DNA of 64,000 nt from Hyaloraphidium curvatum SAG 235-1. Lineage: Eukaryota > Fungi > Monoblepharomycota. The stretch lies in NCBI GenBank assembly GCA_025558095.1, contig JAIVFI010000012.1:248001-312000 (forward strand), written 5' to 3'. The notes beneath the pieces were generated by a model that made no database searches, was not told where the DNA came from, and worked only from the letters and a program-made list of their open reading frames with translations. The translations under genes were made by a program, and so were the position numbers. Below, in pieces: positions 16,823-27,487 of the stretch (the first letter of the stretch is position 1; each line of letters starts with the position of its first letter).

Positions 16823-17944
16823 ATGGCCGACTCCTCCTCCTCCGGGCTCAAGGTCCTGAGCGAGAACAAGCACTTTGGCGGCGTGGTGCGCAAATATGAG
16901 CACGCGTCCGAGGCCTGCGGGTGCGCGATGAAGTTCAACGTCTTCGTCCCGCCGCAAGCCGCGTCGGGCAAGGTGCCCGTGCTGTGGTTCCTGTCGGGGT
17001 TGACGTGCACGGAGGACAACTTCTTCCAGGTTCGTAGCGGGGAGGCCGCGGAGCCGGAGTCCGTCTTTCGGAGGGCTGACGGCCGGGGCAGAAAGCGGGC
17101 GCGTTCCGCAAGGCCGCGGAGCTCGGCATCGCCATCATCGGGCCCGACACGTCACCGCGCGGCGTCAAGATTGAGGGCGACGACGCGAGCTGGGACTTTG
17201 GCGTCGGTGGGTGGCGGCCGGGTTCAGTTTGACACGTCGGGTAGTTGACACGCCATTCGCCCCCATTGTGGACAGCCGCCGGGTTCTACGTGGACGCGAC
17301 CAACCCGCCGTGGTCGTCCAACTACCGGATGTTCACCTATGTGACCCAGGAGCTCTACTCCCTCGTCTCGACGGCACCCGAGTTTGCGTCGTTCGACACC
17401 AAGAGGATGAGCATCACGGGGCACTCGATGGTCCGCTTCCTGCCTGCCGTGGACGGGCGGGAGCTGACCAATCTACGACAGGGCGGCCACGGCGCGCTGA
17501 TCTGCTACCTGAAGACCAAGGAGGCCGGAAAGTGGAAGAGCGTCAGCGCTTTTGCGGTGGGCCGCGACCCCGACCCCTCCCATCCCCTCTGACGTCGTCC
17601 CCGCGCTCCAGCCGATAGTCAACCCCTGCTCGGTCCCGTGGGGCAATAAAGCCTTCACCGGCTACCTCGGCCCCGACCAATCGGCGTGGGCGCAGTACGA
17701 CGCCACGGAGCTGGTCAAGGCCTCCAAGTCGGCCGCGGACCTGGACATCCTGATCGACCAGGGGAGCAAGGACAGCTTCATGCCCGTGAACCTGCAGCCC
17801 GAGGCGTTGGAAAAGGCGGTGACGGAAAAGGGCGGGAAGTGCACTCTGAGGATGCAGGAGGGCTACGATCACTCGTACTGGTTCATCTCGACGTTCATCG
17901 ATGACCACCTGCAGTTTGCCTACGAGAAGCTGGCAAAGCTGTAG
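16823..17944 (+). CDS. ESD: S-formylglutathione hydrolase (esterase D), multi-exon
   Basis: [38 protein letters not shown]|GGHGAL and [16 protein letters not shown]. Confidence 0.95.
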
Positions 17945-18212
17945 GAGAACCCGGCGAGCGTGGGGTCGATCGCGATGAGTGGAGGTCAGCTGAGCTCGTG
18001 CGGCGGCGCTCCCACCGAATAGACATCCATCCTAGATGCTCGATCCATGCTGCTTCATCCGCGGCCGCGCTTCGGTGCCGGCGGTGAGGCGGACGGTCGT
18101 GATGACCCACCTCGAGGACCCGCGGTGCGATCGCACTGCCACAGGGCTCGGCAAACACGCCTTCTCGGATCGCGGGCCAACGAATCGGGGCCGCCACCGC
18201 GCCGGCGTGGCA

Positions 18213-19946
18213 ATGAATTCCCCGCCAGACGCGGCATCGGGCCCGCGGGTGTCGACCGGCGGGTCCGCGGACACGGAGACGGGCGGGAGTCTGCCCGGTT
18301 CCTCGGCATCGGCCGCGACGCTCGGCCCGTATCCGGGCGGCACGGGACCGCCGCCGCTGCCGCTCAACGGACCGCCGATGGAATCGACGTTCGCCTCGGG
18401 GGACGGTGCCGGCGGGCCGGCGGAGAAGCTTTTCCAGGCGGAGGCAGCCGGCACTGCAGCCAATGGGACGGCAAACGGCCTGGCCGCACCGTTGCTCCCG
18501 GCACCCAAGCCTCCCGACGAGGATGTCGACTTTGTGCAGGAGGTCTACAACATCACCAGTGTTTCGACGGCCCACGGCGTGTGGCGCGTCTTCGACAGGA
18601 AGCGCTCCATGGCGAACCGCCTCTGCTGGGCCGTCCTTTGGCTCACGGCCGCCGGGCTGTTCATCACCTATCTCGTGCTCCAGTCGATGTACCTCGCCGA
18701 GTCACCGACGAGCACCCTCATCACCCAGGAGGTCGTCAGCCCCATGCCCTTCCCCGCCGTCTCGATCTGCCTGAGCAGCCTCAACACCTCGCTGATCCGC
18801 GCCTTCGTGCGGCCCATCCCCCCTGGGCCACCCCAGCAACAGCTGGAGACGCTGCTCAACTCGAGCGGCGTGCTGTGCTACTTTGGCTGGCGCACGCTGC
18901 GGCAGCTCTGGAACTCGGACTACTCACTGGGCACCCAGTCGTGCCGCGAGAACGCGACGCTCACCTGGGCGGACTATCCCTTCGCATCGTCGCCGACGCT
19001 CTGCATCACCACCCCGCCGGGCCTCCTGGCGGAGCAGCCCGGCGTCTCGCTGCGGTTCATCGGCCGCCTTCCCTTCCTCGAACCCTTCGACACCGTCACC
19101 TACTCGCTCCGCACCCCGGAATCGCAGATCGAGCCCCTCCTCTCGAACTTTGTCGTCTTTGGCGCCAACACCCGCGTGCGGTTCCAGACCACCATCAGCA
19201 AATCCCTCAAGGAGTGCGATCCCAACCCGGGCGGCCAGCCCGTGTGTTTCTCGCGGTTCCAGCAGCAGTGCATCGAGCGCGCTTGCGACTGCAAGTACCC
19301 CGTCATCGAGCCCGGCATGGCCGAGGAGGACCTGGCGGCGCAGCTCCCCGGTTCCTGCGCGTCCAAGAACCGCGAAGGGACGTGCACGTACCACGACCCA
19401 ATTTTCCCGTGCCCCGACTCGAAGAAGCACCGCAACTGCACCCTCCAGACCCTGTGCGGCCCCACCGAGAGCAAGAAGGCCTGCCCGCTGCCGTCGTGCG
19501 AGGAGACGGACTACCCGCAGGTCGCCTCGCTGTCGCCCATCTCCGAGACGACGTTCGAGGACGTGGCCAACGGCACCGCGGGGACGCTATTCGTGCTTTC
19601 GGTGCTGCTCGAGACGCAGACCGTGACGCTGATCGAGGAGACCGAGGCGTACACGGTGCTCAGCTACCTCGGCGCCGTGGGCGGCATGATGGGCCTGCTG
19701 CTCGGCTTTTCGGTCCTGACCATCCTGGAGTGGTTTGAGGGCTGCTTCCACATCGGGACGAAGGTGGAGGAGATCATCGAGGAGGCGGCGGAGGACGCGG
19801 GGCTGATTTCCGATTCGGACGACGAGGAGGAGGGCAAGGCCGAGGACGTGTTTGCCGGGGTCGAGATGGCCGAGAGGGCGGCGACCGACGTCCCCAAGGC
19901 CGATGAGCCTGTGACGGTGGCCGACCGAGCGGCCACGGTGGCCTGA
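18213..19946 (+). CDS. DEG/ENaC/ASIC-family amiloride-sensitive ion channel subunit (intronless)
   Basis: Pre-TM1 STAHG, TM1, FPAVSIC, Cys-rich thumb, and TM2 YLGAVGGMMGLLLGFSVLTILEWFE with GxS filter. Start codon uncertain: the frame is open from 18036. Confidence 0.9.
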   Translation: MNSPPDAASGPRVSTGGSADTETGGSLPGSSASAATLGPYPGGTGPPPLPLNGPPMESTFASGDGAGGPAEKLFQAEAAGTAANGTANGLAAPLLPAPKPPDEDVDFVQEVYNITSVSTAHGVWRVFDRKRSMANRLCWAVLWLTAAGLFITYLVLQSMYLAESPTSTLITQEVVSPMPFPAVSICLSSLNTSLIRAFVRPIPPGPPQQQLETLLNSSGVLCYFGWRTLRQLWNSDYSLGTQSCRENATLTWADYPFASSPTLCITTPPGLLAEQPGVSLRFIGRLPFLEPFDTVTYSLRTPESQIEPLLSNFVVFGANTRVRFQTTISKSLKECDPNPGGQPVCFSRFQQQCIERACDCKYPVIEPGMAEEDLAAQLPGSCASKNREGTCTYHDPIFPCPDSKKHRNCTLQTLCGPTESKKACPLPSCEETDYPQVASLSPISETTFEDVANGTAGTLFVLSVLLETQTVTLIEETEAYTVLSYLGAVGGMMGLLLGFSVLTILEWFEGCFHIGTKVEEIIEEAAEDAGLISDSDDEEEGKAEDVFAGVEMAERAATDVPKADEPVTVADRAATVA

Positions 19947-20188
19947 GTTGCGGATCTGGCGACGGCCGATCGGGCGGGCACCGCGGCCTGAAGTGCCATT
20001 TCTTTATGGGGATGATGCAAATGCTATTTCTTTGTCTTTCTTGGCATTCGGTAGTTGTTTTGCGGGCAGATTCGGATTCAGGGGGTTTGTCGGGCTGCCG
20101 CATGCTTGACTCGAACCGTCCGCGGAGCGCCTCAGCAGCCATTCACCGCCCGAGGCAACCGGCACCAGCGCTCGTAGCGGACGAGAGC

Positions 20189-21263
20189 ATGAAGTCCATT
20201 TCGGCTTTCGCGACGTGCCTCCTGTTCTTGGCGTTCTCCGCCACGCTTCTTGGCGCGCCCAAGGCCCAAGCCCAGCAGGACCAGTGCTTCCCGGACCGCT
20301 TTCAATGCCAGTTCCCTCCTTCGGGCCCCAGCGCTACTTGCGTCTGTAACGGAGTGACCCTCACGACCCGCACTCTCGTTCAGGTATGTCTCCGGGCTCG
20401 ACCGACAGCATGCGGCCTGCGCTCAGAGGTGGCTTTCGCAGACCGTCTTCGTCTCCAGCACCGCTACTACCGCCTTTTGTACCCTCGTCGTCCCCGTGAC
20501 ATCTTTTGAGACTTCCATTTCAACCATAACGAGCACCTCGACGGCCGTAGTCGACCCCTCGGGGAGCGCAGTAGTGAGTGAAGTGAACCTGCCCTGAGTC
20601 ATCGGTCGCCGATCTCCTCGCGAACGACGGCATGGCCCGCGGGCACTCCTTTTGCTCACTGCTGATACAATTGCCGCTCCAGGTTGTTTCCACGAGCACG
20701 GTTTACCTCCCGAGCACGATTCCGATCACCACGACGGTCGTCGCCCTCCAGAGCACGCTCGTCTGCAACCCGAGCTACGTCTTCACTGTAAAGTGCCGCT
20801 CGAACTCCTTTTCCTATTGCTGATCCTGGTTTCCGCAGTCCACCATCACCAACACGGCCTCCCTTACCTCGTACACAACGCTTTCCCTCGCGACGCTGCC
20901 CAACCAGCCGCCCGTCCTTGTTTCGGGCACCTTGAGCCTCCTCTACACCTCGATCTCGGTGGTCTACGTCACGCAGACGGTGCGTGCCGGCGCGGCAGCA
21001 ACTTTCAGGGTGGTTTCCGTGCTCACAGCGGTCTGCAGGTCCCCACCAACGCACCGACGGCGACGATCACGGTCCCGACCATCATAACGCAGTACATCAC
21101 GGTGACCTCGGCGACGACAACGACTGCCCCGCCGACCTCGCCGACCGGGACGGCAAGCCGGGCCTTCTTCAAGCGCGATTCCGCCCCCGTGGATGGTGCG
21201 AAGGACGGGAACGGGGAGGAGCCGCTCAAGAAGAAGTTCGTCAGGCTTTTCGGGGTCCATTGA
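20189..21263 (+). CDS. Secreted Cys/Thr-rich cell-surface protein, multi-exon
   Basis: Signal peptide MKSISAFATCLLFLAFSATLLG; Cys-rich start; several short GT-AG introns; T/V-rich exons; KR site near the C-terminus. Confidence 0.65.
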
Positions 21264-21354
21264 TGGCCACATTGCCCGGATCTGCCTAGCACTTTCGTGC
21301 GACTCATGTACTATCTTTCCCGCTGTAATCGACTTGTTTCTTTTGCTTCGGTGG

Positions 21355-22550
21355 CCCGGAGGGGAAGCCGTGGAGGCGGAATATTTCGCGAAGGAAGAGC
21401 CGAGCGGTGTCGTCGGCGGAGAAGTCCTTCCGCGCGCCAGCGAAATGAGCCTGCTTGGTCGACCGATCGGCCACGACGAGCACGGCGTCGAATCCCTCGG
21501 ACTGGGGCAGGTCCGTGACGAAGTCCATACTGATCGAACGCCAAGGTCCGTCCGGAATTGGAAGTGGCTGGAGAAGGCCGTGCGGGGCATGGCGCGGGGC
21601 CTTGGTTCGCGTGCACGTCTCGCAGCTCCGAATGTAGCGGGCGACGGTGTCCCAAACACGCGGCCACCAAAAATCTCGCAATATGAGCTCCACAGTCTTG
21701 CGAATTCCGAAGTGGCCGGCAGTAACGGCATCGTGGCGGGTTCGGAGAAGCTCCGTCCGAGACTTGCCGGCCGGCACGAAGATGAGACTGTTGCGGTAGA
21801 GAACGCCATCGAGAAGATGGAAACGAGAAACGGACGCGTCGTGAGCCTCCAGAAGAGCGATAATGCGACGGGCGAATGGGTCCTTGGCCGTATCGCGACG
21901 GATCATGTCCAGGAAATCCAACGAAGTCGCGTGGAGCGCGGCGACCAGGTGCGGCCCGAGGAGCGTGACGCGCTGTTGCGTAGAGACATCGTCGAAGTTG
22001 CCCGGAACGTAGTCGGAGCGGCGAGAAAGCGCGTCGGCGACGACTTGATCGGTGCCGGGTCGATGCTTCAAAACAAAGTCGTAGCCCGCGAGGGTCATGG
22101 CCCATCGAGCCTGACGGCGATTGAGCATCTGCTGCTTCATGAAGAACTCCAGGTTCTTGTGATCCGTGAAGACGTCGACTTTATGTGGGCTACCCTCGAG
22201 GTATCGCCGCCACGCCTTGAACGCGTCGACAACTGCGAGTAGCTCCTTGTCTTAGATCGGGTAGTTGATCTCCGCCGGCTGGAACTTCCGGGAAAGAAAC
22301 GCCACGGGATGCATAAGCCCGTCGTCGGGGGCGGGCTGCGACAGCACGGCTCCGAGGGCGAAGTCGGAAGCATCTGCCTCGACTGTGTACGGAACGGCTG
22401 GATCGGCGTTACGCAGGAACGGAGCCGAAGTGAAAGCGGATTTGAGCGCATCGAAGGCTGCGCGAGCTTCCGGCGTGAAACGGAACGGATCGCCCGGCTT
22501 GAGCTTAGTGAGGTCCGTGAGCGGAATCGCGGGGTGGCAAAGTTCGCGGC
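21355..22550 (-). mobile_element. Degenerate Ty3/gypsy LTR-retrotransposon pol fragment (RT connection, RNase H, integrase N-terminus)
   Basis: VEADASDFALGAVLSQ, YPI*DKELLAVV (TAA at 22252-22254), TDHKNL, RQARW, HHCC zinc finger H..AGH..CETC, ISMDFVTDLP. Truncated after RLHGFP. Boundaries approximate; no LTR seen. Confidence 0.92.
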
Positions 22551-22700
22551 ACAGCCCGGCCGGCGGGGTTTGGACGGGTGCCGACGGCCGCAACAACCTG
22601 GGCTTGCCGCAGGGAGACACAGCTCGTGCTGTGGGAGCCACCCGCGTGCGAGTGACCACCGGACGCTTCGCCAGGCGCACTAGGGCGCGTTCGGGTTGCG

Positions 22701-24543
22701 ATGGCCCGGCCTTCGCGGGATTCGGCCCGCGCCAGGTCTGCGCGGTCCGCCGGAGTCGCATTGGTCGTCTTTTCCACCTTCTTGAGCCTCCTCGCCTCGC
22801 GCGCGCACGGAAACGAAATCGTTTGCGGGCTGAAGTACAAGCTGACGACAATCAAAGGTCTCGTCGAAGCGGACAAGAGCGTCGCGCTGTTCCCGGACTC
22901 CATGGTCCGCCCGGCGAGGTCGAATCCCCCCAATCCCCTCAACTGGTTCGGCAAGCCGACGACTCTCGGCAGAGGACAGTTCGGGGTCGTGCGCCTCGCC
23001 GCGTTGAAGGGCTCGGTGGCATCGGACTACGACAAAGAGCTGGCCGGACCGGACCAACCTGCGCCAAAAGAGAGGCTGTTCGTGATCAAGCGTTCCTCCT
23101 ACGAGGCAGAAAAGGTCAACATGCCGGCCATGCAGCGGATCGAATGGGAGAGGGTCACGGCACCTCGGATTATTGAGGCGGTCAATGGCGGGCCGTTCAT
23201 CATCAAGACCTGGGCGACGTGGACGTGGCCGGTGAAGCCGAAACAAGGTTTCAAATTCATTGACATCAACTACGAGCTCTACGCGGCCGTAACGCCTGGA
23301 ACCGGAGACTTGGTCGCCGAAATTGAGGGCAAGGGCAAGTGGTTCCAAACCGGCCAGACCCCCGCGATTCCGCTGGCCAAGGCGCGGGAGCTCATCGCCA
23401 AGCTGGCTCTGGCAATCGGCTACATCCACGGGAAGGGCATCGTCCACAGGGACATCAAGCCGGACAACATTATCATGTCGTTGACCGGGGAGCCGATGCT
23501 TGCGGACTTCGGATCTGCCATTCACGGAAGCGTAGGCGGCTTTGGGTGCCCCGGTCCGCCTATCGTAATTGCGGGTTTGCTCCCTCAATAGGACCTTGCC
23601 AAGTGGACTCGCCAGACCATTATGATCGCGGCTGGCGGGGACCGCCGGTTCACGGCCCCAGAGGTCCGCAGATTCGACTGCACGGGAGGGAGCGCAGCGA
23701 CCGAAAGGAAAGCGCCATGTGGGAACACCGATCTCGGTTGTTGAACGAATCTCTTACTGGCGGATGTCTGCTCCAGATGGGCGAGGTAGCGACTGGTGGT
23801 CCCTCGGAAGTACGTTGTTGGGAGATTCGGTGTTGCCACCCACCAATCTGACCACCGGCGTCCCCTTCAGTCGTCGCCTACTTCATCCTCATTGGCGAGG
23901 CCCCGGGCAAGTTTGTGCCCTACGACAACTTCCCGTTTATCGAGGAGATTGTCTCAAACAAGAACGACGTTGGGGGGTCCTTTTGCTCGGTACGTTCTCT
24001 GCTCTCGTGATGCTGCTCGGAATGCTCATGGCCATACACATAGTGGAGTCCCAAGTATCTGGACGAGACCAAGCTGGCCAAGATCGGGAACGCCAACGCA
24101 ATCGATTTCGTCCGGCGGCTGCTCGTTGCTGACCCGAAAAAGCGGCTCGGCCGCTATTCGTCAAACAAGCTTGTAGTTCAGGGTACGTCATTTTGTCAAG
24201 GTGTTCTATGCTCCCTGATTGAGCTAACTGGCCTCCGTTGCATGGTACGACAGGATACCAGCAGGTCCTGTGCCACCCGTTCCTGAAATCCGTCTCCAAG
24301 AAGCTCCTCCTCCAAACCGGCCTGCGGTTCGCGGAAGCCATCAACGAGCCCATCGCATGGCCGAGCTCGGACGCAAGCAACCCGGACGCGGACTGGGACG
24401 AGCTCGGCATCACGCCGCCGCAGCCAAGTCCGCCGAACCAGCAGCCCCCGGTGATGCAGGACAACTCCCAAGCGCAAAAGAAGAAGAACGTCGAGGACTA
24501 CTACACCACGATGCCGCCCATTCCGGGGGTCACCGATGTGTAG
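22701..24543 (+). CDS. Ser/Thr protein kinase (AGC-like) with N-terminal signal peptide/anchor, multi-exon
   Basis: LGRGQFGVV, FVIK, HRDIKPDN, DFG; after splicing FTAPE, DWWSLG, DFVRRLLVADPKKRLG and HPFL. First intron 23532-23591. Confidence 0.85.
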
Positions 24544-24837
24544 TTCTATATCATGCACTTGTATCGTTCAGCTTAAGCGAAAGTCACGTCCGTTTACAGA
24601 TTCGACGACGCTTCACGGGCCCCTCCACCCCACGAACGCGCCGATGATGGCCCCTTCAGCTGCGCCCACATGCCCTCGCCTGCGGGAAGAAGCAGAGAGA
24701 ATGGCACAAGTTAAGAATTGGCGCGACAGGCAAGCACTCCTGCGGATCGCGACTGTCCTGGAACCCACCGGGAAGGCCGATCGCACGCGCAAAGAAAAGT
24801 CTATCTGTGAGTCGAAACCTCTACGGATCCGATCCCT

Positions 24838-26628
24838 CTACCTGGCCTCCCTGTTCAGCAGGCACAGCCTCGCCACGAACTCGTGCAGCCTGTCCACGAA
24901 CTTCATCTCCCTCCCCCGCTCCTCCGTCCCGTCCGGCGCTACAAACACCCTGTCGATCCCCACCCCCCCGATCCCGTCCCCTCTCGCGCGCAGCCTGTCC
25001 AAGCGGCGCATCCACCTTCCCATCGCCTCCAGCGCCCTCCCCGCCTGCGCGAACCCCTCGACCAGCACGAAATCGTGGCACGCCTCGCCGTACACCTCGT
25101 GGCGCACCCATTTGCGGCCGCGGGCTGCGTTGTCGGCCGCGTACCGGTCCGCGAGGAGCACCGAGTCGTCGAGCATCTGCTCGTGCGAGGCCGACTGGAT
25201 GAGGACGGGGGGGAAGAGGGAGAGGTCCGCGGTGCGGACGCCCGAGACGAGGGGGTGGAGGATGAGGGAGAGGAGGGCGATCTCGGCGGAGAGGCGGGTG
25301 GGTTGGTGCGGGGCGGTGGTGGCGGGACCGGCCGGGCCGGCGCTCCGCGAGGGTGTCGGGGGCGGAGAAGGGAAGGAGCCGTCGCGGCCGAGACTGCTGC
25401 GGGCAGCAAGCGAGCCGTCCAAAGAGGCTTTGAGGGAAGAGGCTTCGGCGGGCGATGGGGGTGGTGTCGAAGGCACGTGCATGCTGAAAGACGATGCCCT
25501 CGTGATGAGTGGATGCCTCCTCGCCGGCCGTGGCAGGCCTCTCGTCGTATGCGGCCCCGCAACCTCTGGATCCAGCCGGGCAAGCCGCTCGCCCGCCGCG
25601 TATGCGGTCCCGAGCCTCGTCTGCCTGGGCACGCTGTCGAAGCCGTTGACGTACGCCCAAGCGCAGTTGATGCTGCCGTCGTAGATCCTGTCCAGCATGC
25701 TGTTCATGACGGTCCGCGGGACGGTGTCGATCCAGCCGTTGGTGTCCCACGACTTGTTGCAGTGCGTCAGGTCGAACCAGCCCGAGTGGAGGATCAGGCC
25801 GCCGGGCATGGCAAAGGCGGGCGTGCGGTCGGGGTTGAGGAGGAAGCTGCGGAGGTAGACGGCGGCGGCGAGGGCGATGTTGCCGCCCGCGCTGTCCCCG
25901 AAGAAGACAAGGTCCTCGGGGTCGTACACGGGGAGCTGGTGGCCCATGCCGATCCTGGCCGCCTTGAAGGCCGGGTTCGATGGGTCCGTGAGGTACAAGT
26001 ACGCGGCAAACACGTCGTGGATGGCGGCCGGCCACGGCCTCTCGGGCGGCTTCCTGTACTCGACCGTGAGCACGTCGGCCTCGGTCTCCTTGGCCATCCG
26101 CGCCGCGAACCCGCGGTACATGGAGATGGTGCAAAATGCAAAGGCCCCGCCATGCACGACGATGATGCACTTGCGCCGCTTGCCCTTCTCGACGTCCACG
26201 GCCGTGTACCACTCGGCCGTCAGCCGGTACTCGTGCTCCTCCTTCCTGGGCAGGGACGGCTTCCCCGAATCCAAGTCAAACTCGACCTCCTCGGGCACAA
26301 AGTATCCCTGGAAGCCCTCGGGGAACATGCGGCGCGTTCTCCGCTCGTGCGAAAGTAGGGATGCCACGTCGACAGTCCACTCGATGCCCAGCACGCGCAG
26401 GCCGTCCTTCTCGGCGGCGGCGATCCTGCCCGCGGCGGCGTCGACGAGCCGCTCGATGCGCCGCACCTTCGGCACGGTGTGTTTGCGCTTCACGTCGAGC
26501 GCGCACTTTGTTGCGGCGACGGTGAGCGCGTACGACAGCGTCCACGACGGCAGCGGCGGGCCGCGCACCGCGAACCGGAACAGCGCGCCGAGCACCGTGC
26601 ACGTGAGCGCGTATAGCAGCTCGAGCAT
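24838..26628 (-). CDS. Alpha/beta hydrolase, HSL/GDXG lipase-esterase family
   Basis: VHGGAF, EYRKPPE.PWPAAIHD, GDSAGGN and HDF motifs. Confidence 0.92.
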   Translation of the reverse strand: MLELLYALTCTVLGALFRFAVRGPPLPSWTLSYALTVAATKCALDVKRKHTVPKVRRIERLVDAAAGRIAAAEKDGLRVLGIEWTVDVASLLSHERRTRRMFPEGFQGYFVPEEVEFDLDSGKPSLPRKEEHEYRLTAEWYTAVDVEKGKRRKCIIVVHGGAFAFCTISMYRGFAARMAKETEADVLTVEYRKPPERPWPAAIHDVFAAYLYLTDPSNPAFKAARIGMGHQLPVYDPEDLVFFGDSAGGNIALAAAVYLRSFLLNPDRTPAFAMPGGLILHSGWFDLTHCNKSWDTNGWIDTVPRTVMNSMLDRIYDGSINCAWAYVNGFDSVPRQTRLGTAYAAGERLARLDPEVAGPHTTRGLPRPARRHPLITRASSFSMHVPSTPPPSPAEASSLKASLDGSLAARSSLGRDGSFPSPPPTPSRSAGPAGPATTAPHQPTRLSAEIALLSLILHPLVSGVRTADLSLFPPVLIQSASHEQMLDDSVLLADRYAADNAARGRKWVRHEVYGEACHDFVLVEGFAQAGRALEAMGRWMRRLDRLRARGDGIGGVGIDRVFVAPDGTEERGREMKFVDRLHEFVARLCLLNREAR

Positions 26629-27487
26629 TGCACCGACAGCGGGGCGGGAACGCCGCGGGGAGGCCGCCGCGGTGGCGCCATGGTTCGAGCGCGACGGTGT
26701 TTTGGAGACGCGTCGGTTGCCGTTTCCAAGCCAAACTCCGCCGACGTTTCAGCTAAGGCCTCCCTTTCGTAGCGGTGACCTTCAATAGAAATGCGTTGGC
26801 ACGGTCCTTGTCTTGCGACGGTGTGGATTCCTCGTTGGGGCCCGTCCGTCCCGTCCTCCCGCGAGCCTGATCTCCATCCGGGCGTCGGCCGACACCCCGC
26901 GCTCTGACGGTCTGTCGCTTTCTGTGAATGCACTTGCCTGCACCTTGCGGGTGCACTTGCTACCATCTACGTCGTCCGATCTTGGCTCCGTCCGTCGGTT
27001 TCCGCGACTTGCCGTTTCGGCCAAATGACAGGGGTTCCGTGAGGATCCCCTAGTATGACGACGCCAATTGAGCAATTGAGGGACATCAAACGCTCACCTC
27101 CGCTGTCCCCTTCAGCCAGCCCTGCCCATCGCCTTCTTCTTCGCCGCTTGACGCTCATACTGGTCCGTTCTTTTCCTGTTCCCCGCCCCACGGCCGTGCC
27201 GTGCGGGGGGCTTTCACGTGGCGCGACCTCGCGACCCACCTCGACAGCAGCCGGCTATGACCTCGTAACCAGAAGCCGGACAGAAATGTCCGTAGTTCAT
27301 TTTTGATCCAAGATAAACACTAGGTGAGAGAGGCGAGGAACCCTTCTTGGATGGCCGTACGCAATGCCAGGCCTTCGGGCCACATCCGAGGGCTGGTGCG
27401 TGACCGTGGGACTGCCGCCCGGCCAAGCCTTGTCTTCGGTTTCTTTGACCCGCTGAAGGTGCAACTGCTCAGTCTAGCGGACAGATT

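Follow-up and report, generated by a model that had tools for sequence, protein, structure and literature searches.

A Single-Exon Gene for a DEG/ENaC-Family Channel Subunit in the Atypical Fungus Hyaloraphidium curvatum

Introduction

Recent phylogenies treat the DEG/ENaC channels as belonging essentially to animals, apart from a few isolated homologues in protists, and leave undecided whether the family arose in animals or came by lateral transfer (PMC10507113, PMC9822975). The non-animal homologues described are those of Tunicaraptor unikontum, Cafeteria roenbergensis and Symbiodinium, no fungus being among them, and when Fungi were explicitly searched by BLAST, they yielded none: all candidates came from holozoans and from a single alveolate and a single stramenopile (PMC10507113). 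The residues H73 and K211 are regarded as the quintessential proton-sensing residues of the ASIC channels, while proton gating is held to have arisen several times in the DEG/ENaC family by differing determinants (PMC10507113). No report of the DEG/ENaC family from fungi was found in the searchable literature, nor any joining Hyaloraphidium with ENaC or the chytrids with the family; the 'ENaC' match in a chytrid paper proved to be the word 'enact' and not a channel. The expectation of the original prediction, made from the DNA sequence alone, that such a channel would be a surprise in fungi has therefore held on checking for prior documentation in the lineage.

Hyaloraphidium curvatum, placed by the NCBI taxonomy in Fungi, Monoblepharomycota, is an atypical non-flagellated fungus that was originally described as a colourless alga (PMC8371127). 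The host is thus a true but atypical fungus, early-branching, of chytrid grade and living in freshwater. Its genome had been called fungus-like from the sequence, and the host is indeed a fungus, but not a typical one. The DNA considered here, referred to below as the window, is a stretch of 64,000 nucleotides of the contig JAIVFI010000012.1 (contig 12, positions 248,001 to 312,000; strain SAG 235-1, assembly GCA_025558095.1), and all positions without a contig name are counted from its first letter.

Gene Structure and Transcription

The list of open reading frames of the window holds one frame at 18036..19946 on the forward strand, which gives 577 amino acids when started at the ATG at 18213, and this translation is identical to the recorded protein P0001; its parts and motifs are collected in Table 1. 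The RNA evidence comes from the assembled contigs of one public run, in which seven GT..AG introns of the flanking genes (four in the esterase gene upstream, three in the gene that follows downstream) are missing, and the run is therefore RNA-derived. One of its contigs is colinear with the window from 18147 to 20380 with no joint, so that the channel gene is transcribed and carries no intron; as a single public run available as contigs only, this basis for expression carries no level, strand or condition. Since no ATG occurs in any frame within 18147-18212, the ATG at 18213 is the first start codon of the transcript.

The RNA contig of the channel gene runs on into the next gene on the forward strand (19947-21300), from which three GT..AG introns (20380/20439, 20573/20683 and 20787/20839) have been removed and whose product is a signal-peptide protein. 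The presence of both genes in one RNA contig could be due to read-through, overlapping untranslated regions or an assembly merge. The gene model as such was known before: NCBI already lists the DEG/ENaC proteins of H. curvatum, each named 'hypothetical protein' and automatically assigned an ASC domain match.

Table 1. Features of the channel gene and of its upstream neighbour (positions in the window; aa, residues of the 577-aa protein)
Feature	Position	Strand	Basis or remark
Upstream neighbour, esterase D / S-formylglutathione-hydrolase-like (Pfam Esterase), 4 GT..AG introns	16847..17944	+	
5' untranslated leader	18147..18212	+	RNA-derived contig starts at 18147, right after an adapter remnant
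Complete single-exon CDS, DEG/ENaC (Pfam ASC) subunit, 577 aa + stop (= P0001)	18213..19946	+	
N-terminal ~95 aa, rich in Ala, Gly, Pro, Ser	18213..18497	+	composition; poorly conserved among paralogues; outside the model
STAHG	18564-18578	+	
Pre-TM1 His-Gly gating motif, H121-G122	18573..18578	+	aligns to TLHG of ASIC1
TM1 helix, aa 133-162, core aa 137-159	18609..18698	+	DSSP of AF2 model (H38-67) and hydropathy
Extracellular domain, aa 163-481, 16 Cys, 5 N-glycosylation sequons	18699..19655	+	
Post-TM1 FPAVSIC, aa 180-186	18750-18770	+	
Cys-rich thumb, C335 to C429	19215..19499	+	model helices H246-263, H286-293
CIERACDC	19269-19292	+	
CPLPSC	19482-19499	+	
EETEAY	19635-19652	+	
TM2, aa 482-528	19656..19796	+	model helices H387-401, H406-433
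LGAVGG	19668-19685	+	
Selectivity-filter triplet G498-F499-S500 (GFS)	19704..19712	+	family consensus G/S-x-S
Acidic C-terminal tail, aa 515-577, net charge -15	19755..19943	+	

Family Membership, Fold and Topology

The Pfam search returned one family only, ASC (PF00858), at E 4.2e-28 and with a score of 99 bits, the cut-off being 23.6; it is matched in two stretches on the TM1 side and the TM2 side, and the same match was obtained in the genome scan. The sequence search of the PDB led to ASIC1 (E 7e-13), ASIC2, ASIC5 and FaNaC, again in two stretches, near TM1 and near TM2, and the hydropathy profile contains exactly two hydrophobic segments, at aa 137-159 and 481-507. The structure of aa 96-532 was predicted on the basis of a 130-sequence family alignment (A3) with a mean pLDDT of 88.7 and a pTM of 0.82. 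In the resulting AF2 model, an ectodomain of 320 aa with mixed alpha/beta structure lies between a long helix for TM1 (H38-67, model numbering) and one for TM2 (H387-433). In the structure searches the model matches the ASIC/ENaC ectodomain fold, with human ASIC1a as the top entry of the PDB by Foldseek (E 2e-21) and a match to an ASIC2 cluster in the ESM Atlas (TM 0.68), where 30 of the 30 feature matches were ASC. The complex prediction for aa 96-532 scored 0.05, a value that refers to two copies only and weighs neither for nor against a trimer such as that of the solved relatives. The proton-activated chloride channel PAC/TMEM206 was neither a sequence match nor a best-fold match of the 577-aa protein.

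The 577-aa protein is a DEG/ENaC-family channel subunit, the family match being far beyond chance. The assignment to the DEG/ENaC/ASIC family in the original prediction agrees with both the Pfam ASC search and the fold comparison, and the family hallmarks that it had listed in order were all recovered, on recomputing, where it had placed them. In the 130-sequence alignment, columns conserved by more than 90% hold the F, P and C of FPAVSIC as well as the G and S of the filter, the middle Phe of which is unusual; the TM2 helix of the model breaks at L497-G498-F499-S500, as the ASIC TM2 does at the GAS belt. The ASIC1 ectodomain contains seven disulfides, and 13 of the 16 ectodomain cysteines of the fungal protein fall in family-wide conserved cysteine columns of the 130-sequence sample; by sequence, C353 plausibly matches a 14th family-conserved cysteine, and C400 with C409 make up an extra, clade-specific pair in the thumb. 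By the topology of the family, the N-terminal ~95 aa would be cytoplasmic. Neither a furin-type site (R-x-K/R-R) nor a PPxY motif occurs in the whole 577-aa protein, C-terminal tail included.

The Fungal-Environmental Clade and the Paralogues

The search of the 31.9-Mb assembly with the clade profile revealed five loci: the window copy, C12:721k, C31:81k, C31:93k and C31:334k. In the exhaustive profile search of 1.84 billion representatives, 520 matches were obtained at E <= 0.001; the seven at or below 1e-41 all belong to H. curvatum or to environmental sequences, the next one stands at 6e-17, and there were no close relatives from any other named fungus. The window copy is accompanied in the clade by the paralogues P0002, P0004, P0006 and P0009 and by the environmental proteins P0003 (on the contig L007), P0155, P0008/P0156 and P0157, and three subclades are distinguished by both FastTree and IQ-TREE. 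Across all three, at 37-55% identity, the 16 ectodomain cysteines and the LLGFS of the filter are invariant, which shows selection on the ectodomain scaffold and the pore. At 50% protein identity, synonymous sites are saturated. The HG motif is kept in the window copy, and HD or PP stands instead in the subclades with P0009/P0157 and P0008/P0156.

Among the five ASC loci, the window copy alone gives a match in a single uninterrupted piece, the paralogues being split into 2-4 pieces, presumably by introns (C12:720785-722400, C31:93062-94443 and C31:334063-335504), and P0003 in L007 is a single ORF too. The single-piece window copy and the single-ORF P0003 together point to intron loss or a retrocopy origin before the split from the L007 organism. 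The paralogue P0006 (C31:80888-81766) matches only the profile positions 30-315, its deposited model diverging past the thumb; either this copy is truncated or in decay, or the gene model may be wrong. In the JGI metagenome 3300059473, the contigs of P0156 and P0157 represent two subclades in one sample and carry genes of eukaryotic type (bZIP, kinase, zf-AN1), and this metagenome probably contains an uncultured relative of Hyaloraphidium.

Origin of the Clade

The trees were built with FastTree on 130 rows and with IQ-TREE under LG+C20 (PMSF) on 44 rows and 467 columns, in both cases without the sequences of Tunicaraptor, Cafeteria and Symbiodinium. In the 44-row tree, the fungal-environmental clade has a support of 100/99 and is paired at 97/95 with P0014 from the ichthyosporean Chromosphaera perkinsii, both branches being long. 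P0014 (EukProt EP01135_P003702) has 647 aa, an ASC domain and a GAS filter but lacks HG; the non-animal holders listed in two recent DEG/ENaC phylogenies include no ichthyosporean. In the tree without P0014, the clade, with a stem of 2.05, stands weakly (support 62) beside a gastropod protein. The hhalign scores of the clade are nearly equal for the ichthyosporean (114), the snail (112) and the jellyfish (109) proteins, so that the pairing with P0014 has no backing from excess similarity. In neither FastTree nor IQ-TREE is the clade nested with support in any animal subgroup.

Two readings of the origin are to be weighed. According to the first, to which we would give a little less than an even chance, the family was already present in the fungus-animal ancestor and was kept by Hyaloraphidium with its relatives and by Chromosphaera, the fungal channels being environmental sensors whose G-F-S selectivity or gating may be unlike that of the animal ones. 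An ancient horizontal transfer into the Hyaloraphidium lineage from an animal, a unicellular holozoan or another protist, followed by duplication, has a nearly even probability as well: the distribution is patchy, with close relatives only in H. curvatum and environmental contigs, and the published BLAST search of Fungi gave no candidates (PMC10507113), but the best tree joins the clade to a non-animal opisthokont with a support of 97/95. The similarity of the clade to snail, jellyfish and ichthyosporean proteins, about equal, and its weak placement (62) beside a gastropod protein once the ichthyosporean row is left out would suit a transfer, against which stands the lack of supported nesting in any animal subclade. 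The long stem (about 1-2 substitutions per site), the host-like codon usage, the introns of the paralogues and the conserved synteny also speak against it and mean that any transfer would be old. Retention or transfer was the pair of explanations offered from the sequence alone, and it is kept after the phylogeny with animal and protist sequences, as the trees fit either reading. We lean slightly towards vertical descent, in which the gene would go back to an opisthokont older than the animals and would have been lost widely among the other fungi.

Pore and Ectodomain Residues and the Possible Mode of Gating

The residues were mapped by alignment to chicken ASIC1, counted from GAS = 443-445; the chicken row (P0046, isoform X2) is without part of the finger, and the acidic pocket and K211 lie outside the mapping. 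Both substitutions indicated in the original prediction are seen in this alignment, GFS replacing GAS and Ala replacing the Asp of the ASIC GDIGG, which reads GAVGG in the fungal protein. Thus, G487 aligns to the degenerin position, E506 and E509 in the lower TM2 to E451 and D454 of ASIC1, and G494 to G439, which we take to be the position of the amiloride-site residue of ENaC. A488 stands where ASIC1 has D433 and T481 where it has E426, these being presumably the positions of the acidic pair of the ASIC1 Ca2+ block (rat E425/D432). The post-TM1 His of ASIC1 (YPHVT), assumed here to be the sensor His of ASIC (H73/H74), aligns to a Thr (SPTST). The replacement of these sensor and Ca2+-block residues by Thr, T481 and A488 suggests that the stimulus is not the ASIC proton/Ca2+ mechanism. 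Measured by these residues, the protein lacks the marks of the ASIC subfamily, and it does not group in the ASIC clade either, P0046 being found elsewhere in the tree; of the ENaC subfamily, it has neither the furin sites of the finger (GRIP) nor the C-terminal PPxY.

By analogy with the solved relatives, the protein would act as a trimer in the plasma membrane, homomeric or together with the paralogues, its glycosylated, disulfide-rich ectodomain facing the cell-wall space. An extracellular stimulus would move the ectodomain and let small cations pass through a pore that, judging from the sequence and from residue roles in the ASIC/ENaC mutagenesis literature, would most likely be Na+-preferring and amiloride-blockable and would keep the gating loop of the family. 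The Phe in the middle of the filter could alter the selectivity or the conductance, and the proteolytic and Nedd4 regulation of the ENaC type would be absent. As our best guess, the channel responds to some chemical or ionic signal in the surrounding water and acts as an environmental sensor or a cation-entry pathway.

A proton-gated, ASIC-like acid sensor is unlikely, since the post-TM1 His of ASIC1 (YPHVT) is a Thr (SPTST), the presumed Ca2+-block residues have become T481 and A488, and the protein lies outside the ASIC clade, even though ASIC1a is the best structural match and the best PDB sequence match. The repeated origin of proton gating from different determinants also belongs on the side of an acid sensor (PMC10507113).

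It is also improbable that we are dealing with a relic, either in decay or unable to conduct (a pseudo-channel, for instance, or a protein that serves some other purpose), in which the bulky filter Phe would block conduction. The atypical G-F-S, the paralogue at C31:80.9k (P0006), in which the last third of the profile is unmatched, and the loss of the HG motif in two subclades would be in keeping with such decay; however, the ORF is intact and transcribed, and the invariance of the 16 cysteines and LLGFS over the subclades and at least two organisms indicates purifying selection on the pore itself.

Host Authenticity and Neighbourhood

The paralogue P0002, encoded on the same contig of 786,496 bp, is an NCBI protein of H. 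curvatum. The GC3 of the channel ORF is 0.90 vs 0.91 in the spliced CDS of the neighbouring esterase gene, and the flanks carry ordinary eukaryotic genes: ABC1 kinase, esterase D, protein kinase, alpha/beta hydrolase and a gypsy integrase fragment. The orthologue P0003 lies on an independent Logan contig, L007 (SRR23967301, GC 56%), and is 49% identical to the 577-aa protein over the full length and 53-54% over aa 96-532. On L007, P0003 directly follows DUF6787-like and esterase genes, in the same upstream order as in the window, and the genes downstream of the channel are also common to both, but inverted. This inversion relative to the related L007 organism is bounded by the genes of the secreted protein and of Abhydrolase_3 (window 20225-26630 vs L007 7758-11695); a kinase gene and the gypsy integrase fragment at 21304-22140, both inside the block in the window, are missing in the L007 stretch.

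The argument against contamination drawn earlier from the spliced, host-style flanking genes is joined by the GC3, the RNA contigs, the five loci and the synteny with L007; chimerism of the contig was also checked, and the colinear RNA contigs and the same gene order in L007 show that it is not chimeric. Contaminating animal DNA or a chimeric assembly, suggested by nothing but the overwhelmingly animal character of the family, is hardly conceivable for a gene that lies within a 786-kb contig among spliced host-style genes of equal GC3, is one of five paralogous loci in the genome, has an orthologue flanked by the same neighbours in an independent sample, and whose closest animal protein is only ~25% identical.

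Overall Reading and Significance

Taken as a whole, we consider it likely that the nuclear genome of H. curvatum truly carries and transcribes a gene for a DEG/ENaC subunit, that the subunit forms a trimeric cation channel opened by a non-ASIC stimulus, and that it belongs to a five-locus family. The sequences described add a small new clade to a well-known family of channels, and do so in a kingdom where the family was not expected. An expressed, multi-copy and conserved fungal clade carries the family over into the fungal half of the Opisthokonta, provides a non-animal group for the rooting of the DEG/ENaC tree, and bears on the question of where the channels used by animals for sensing acid, touch and salt first arose. 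With a single-exon gene and, if the strain is culturable, a living host, the role of such a channel in a cell without nerves or epithelia and the ancestral mode of gating would become directly testable. If the pre-animal origin is true, these channels would serve a walled, non-motile and nerve-less cell as sensors of chemical or ionic conditions in the environment.

Comparison with Known Systems

The fungal protein shares with ASIC1 (chicken ASIC1 and human ASIC1a; PDB 2qts, 6vtk, 9e4d) the ASC domain, the two TM helices, the HG and FPAVxxC motifs, the conserved disulfide cysteines and the TM2 broken at G-x-S, as well as the acidic residues at the E451/D454 positions and the Gly at the degenerin and amiloride-site positions. 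However, the identity is only 17-21%, the fungal ectodomain is of ~320 aa, the filter is GFS and not GAS, Ala and Thr occupy the Ca2+-block positions and Thr that of the post-TM1 His, and the fungal protein has in addition the extra thumb cysteine pair, a long low-complexity N-terminus and an acidic C-terminal tail. ENaC (PDB 6bqn, 6wth, 9btu) is an obligate heterotrimer in composition, and the fungal protein differs from it in being without furin sites and without the C-terminal PPxY. The Chromosphaera perkinsii protein P0014 is likewise a non-animal member of the family, with 26% identity over 374 aligned columns, but it has GAS and no HG, whereas the fungal protein has GFS and HG. The closest likeness is to the paralogues and the environmental orthologues, with 37-57% identity, the same 16 cysteines and the same LLGFS.
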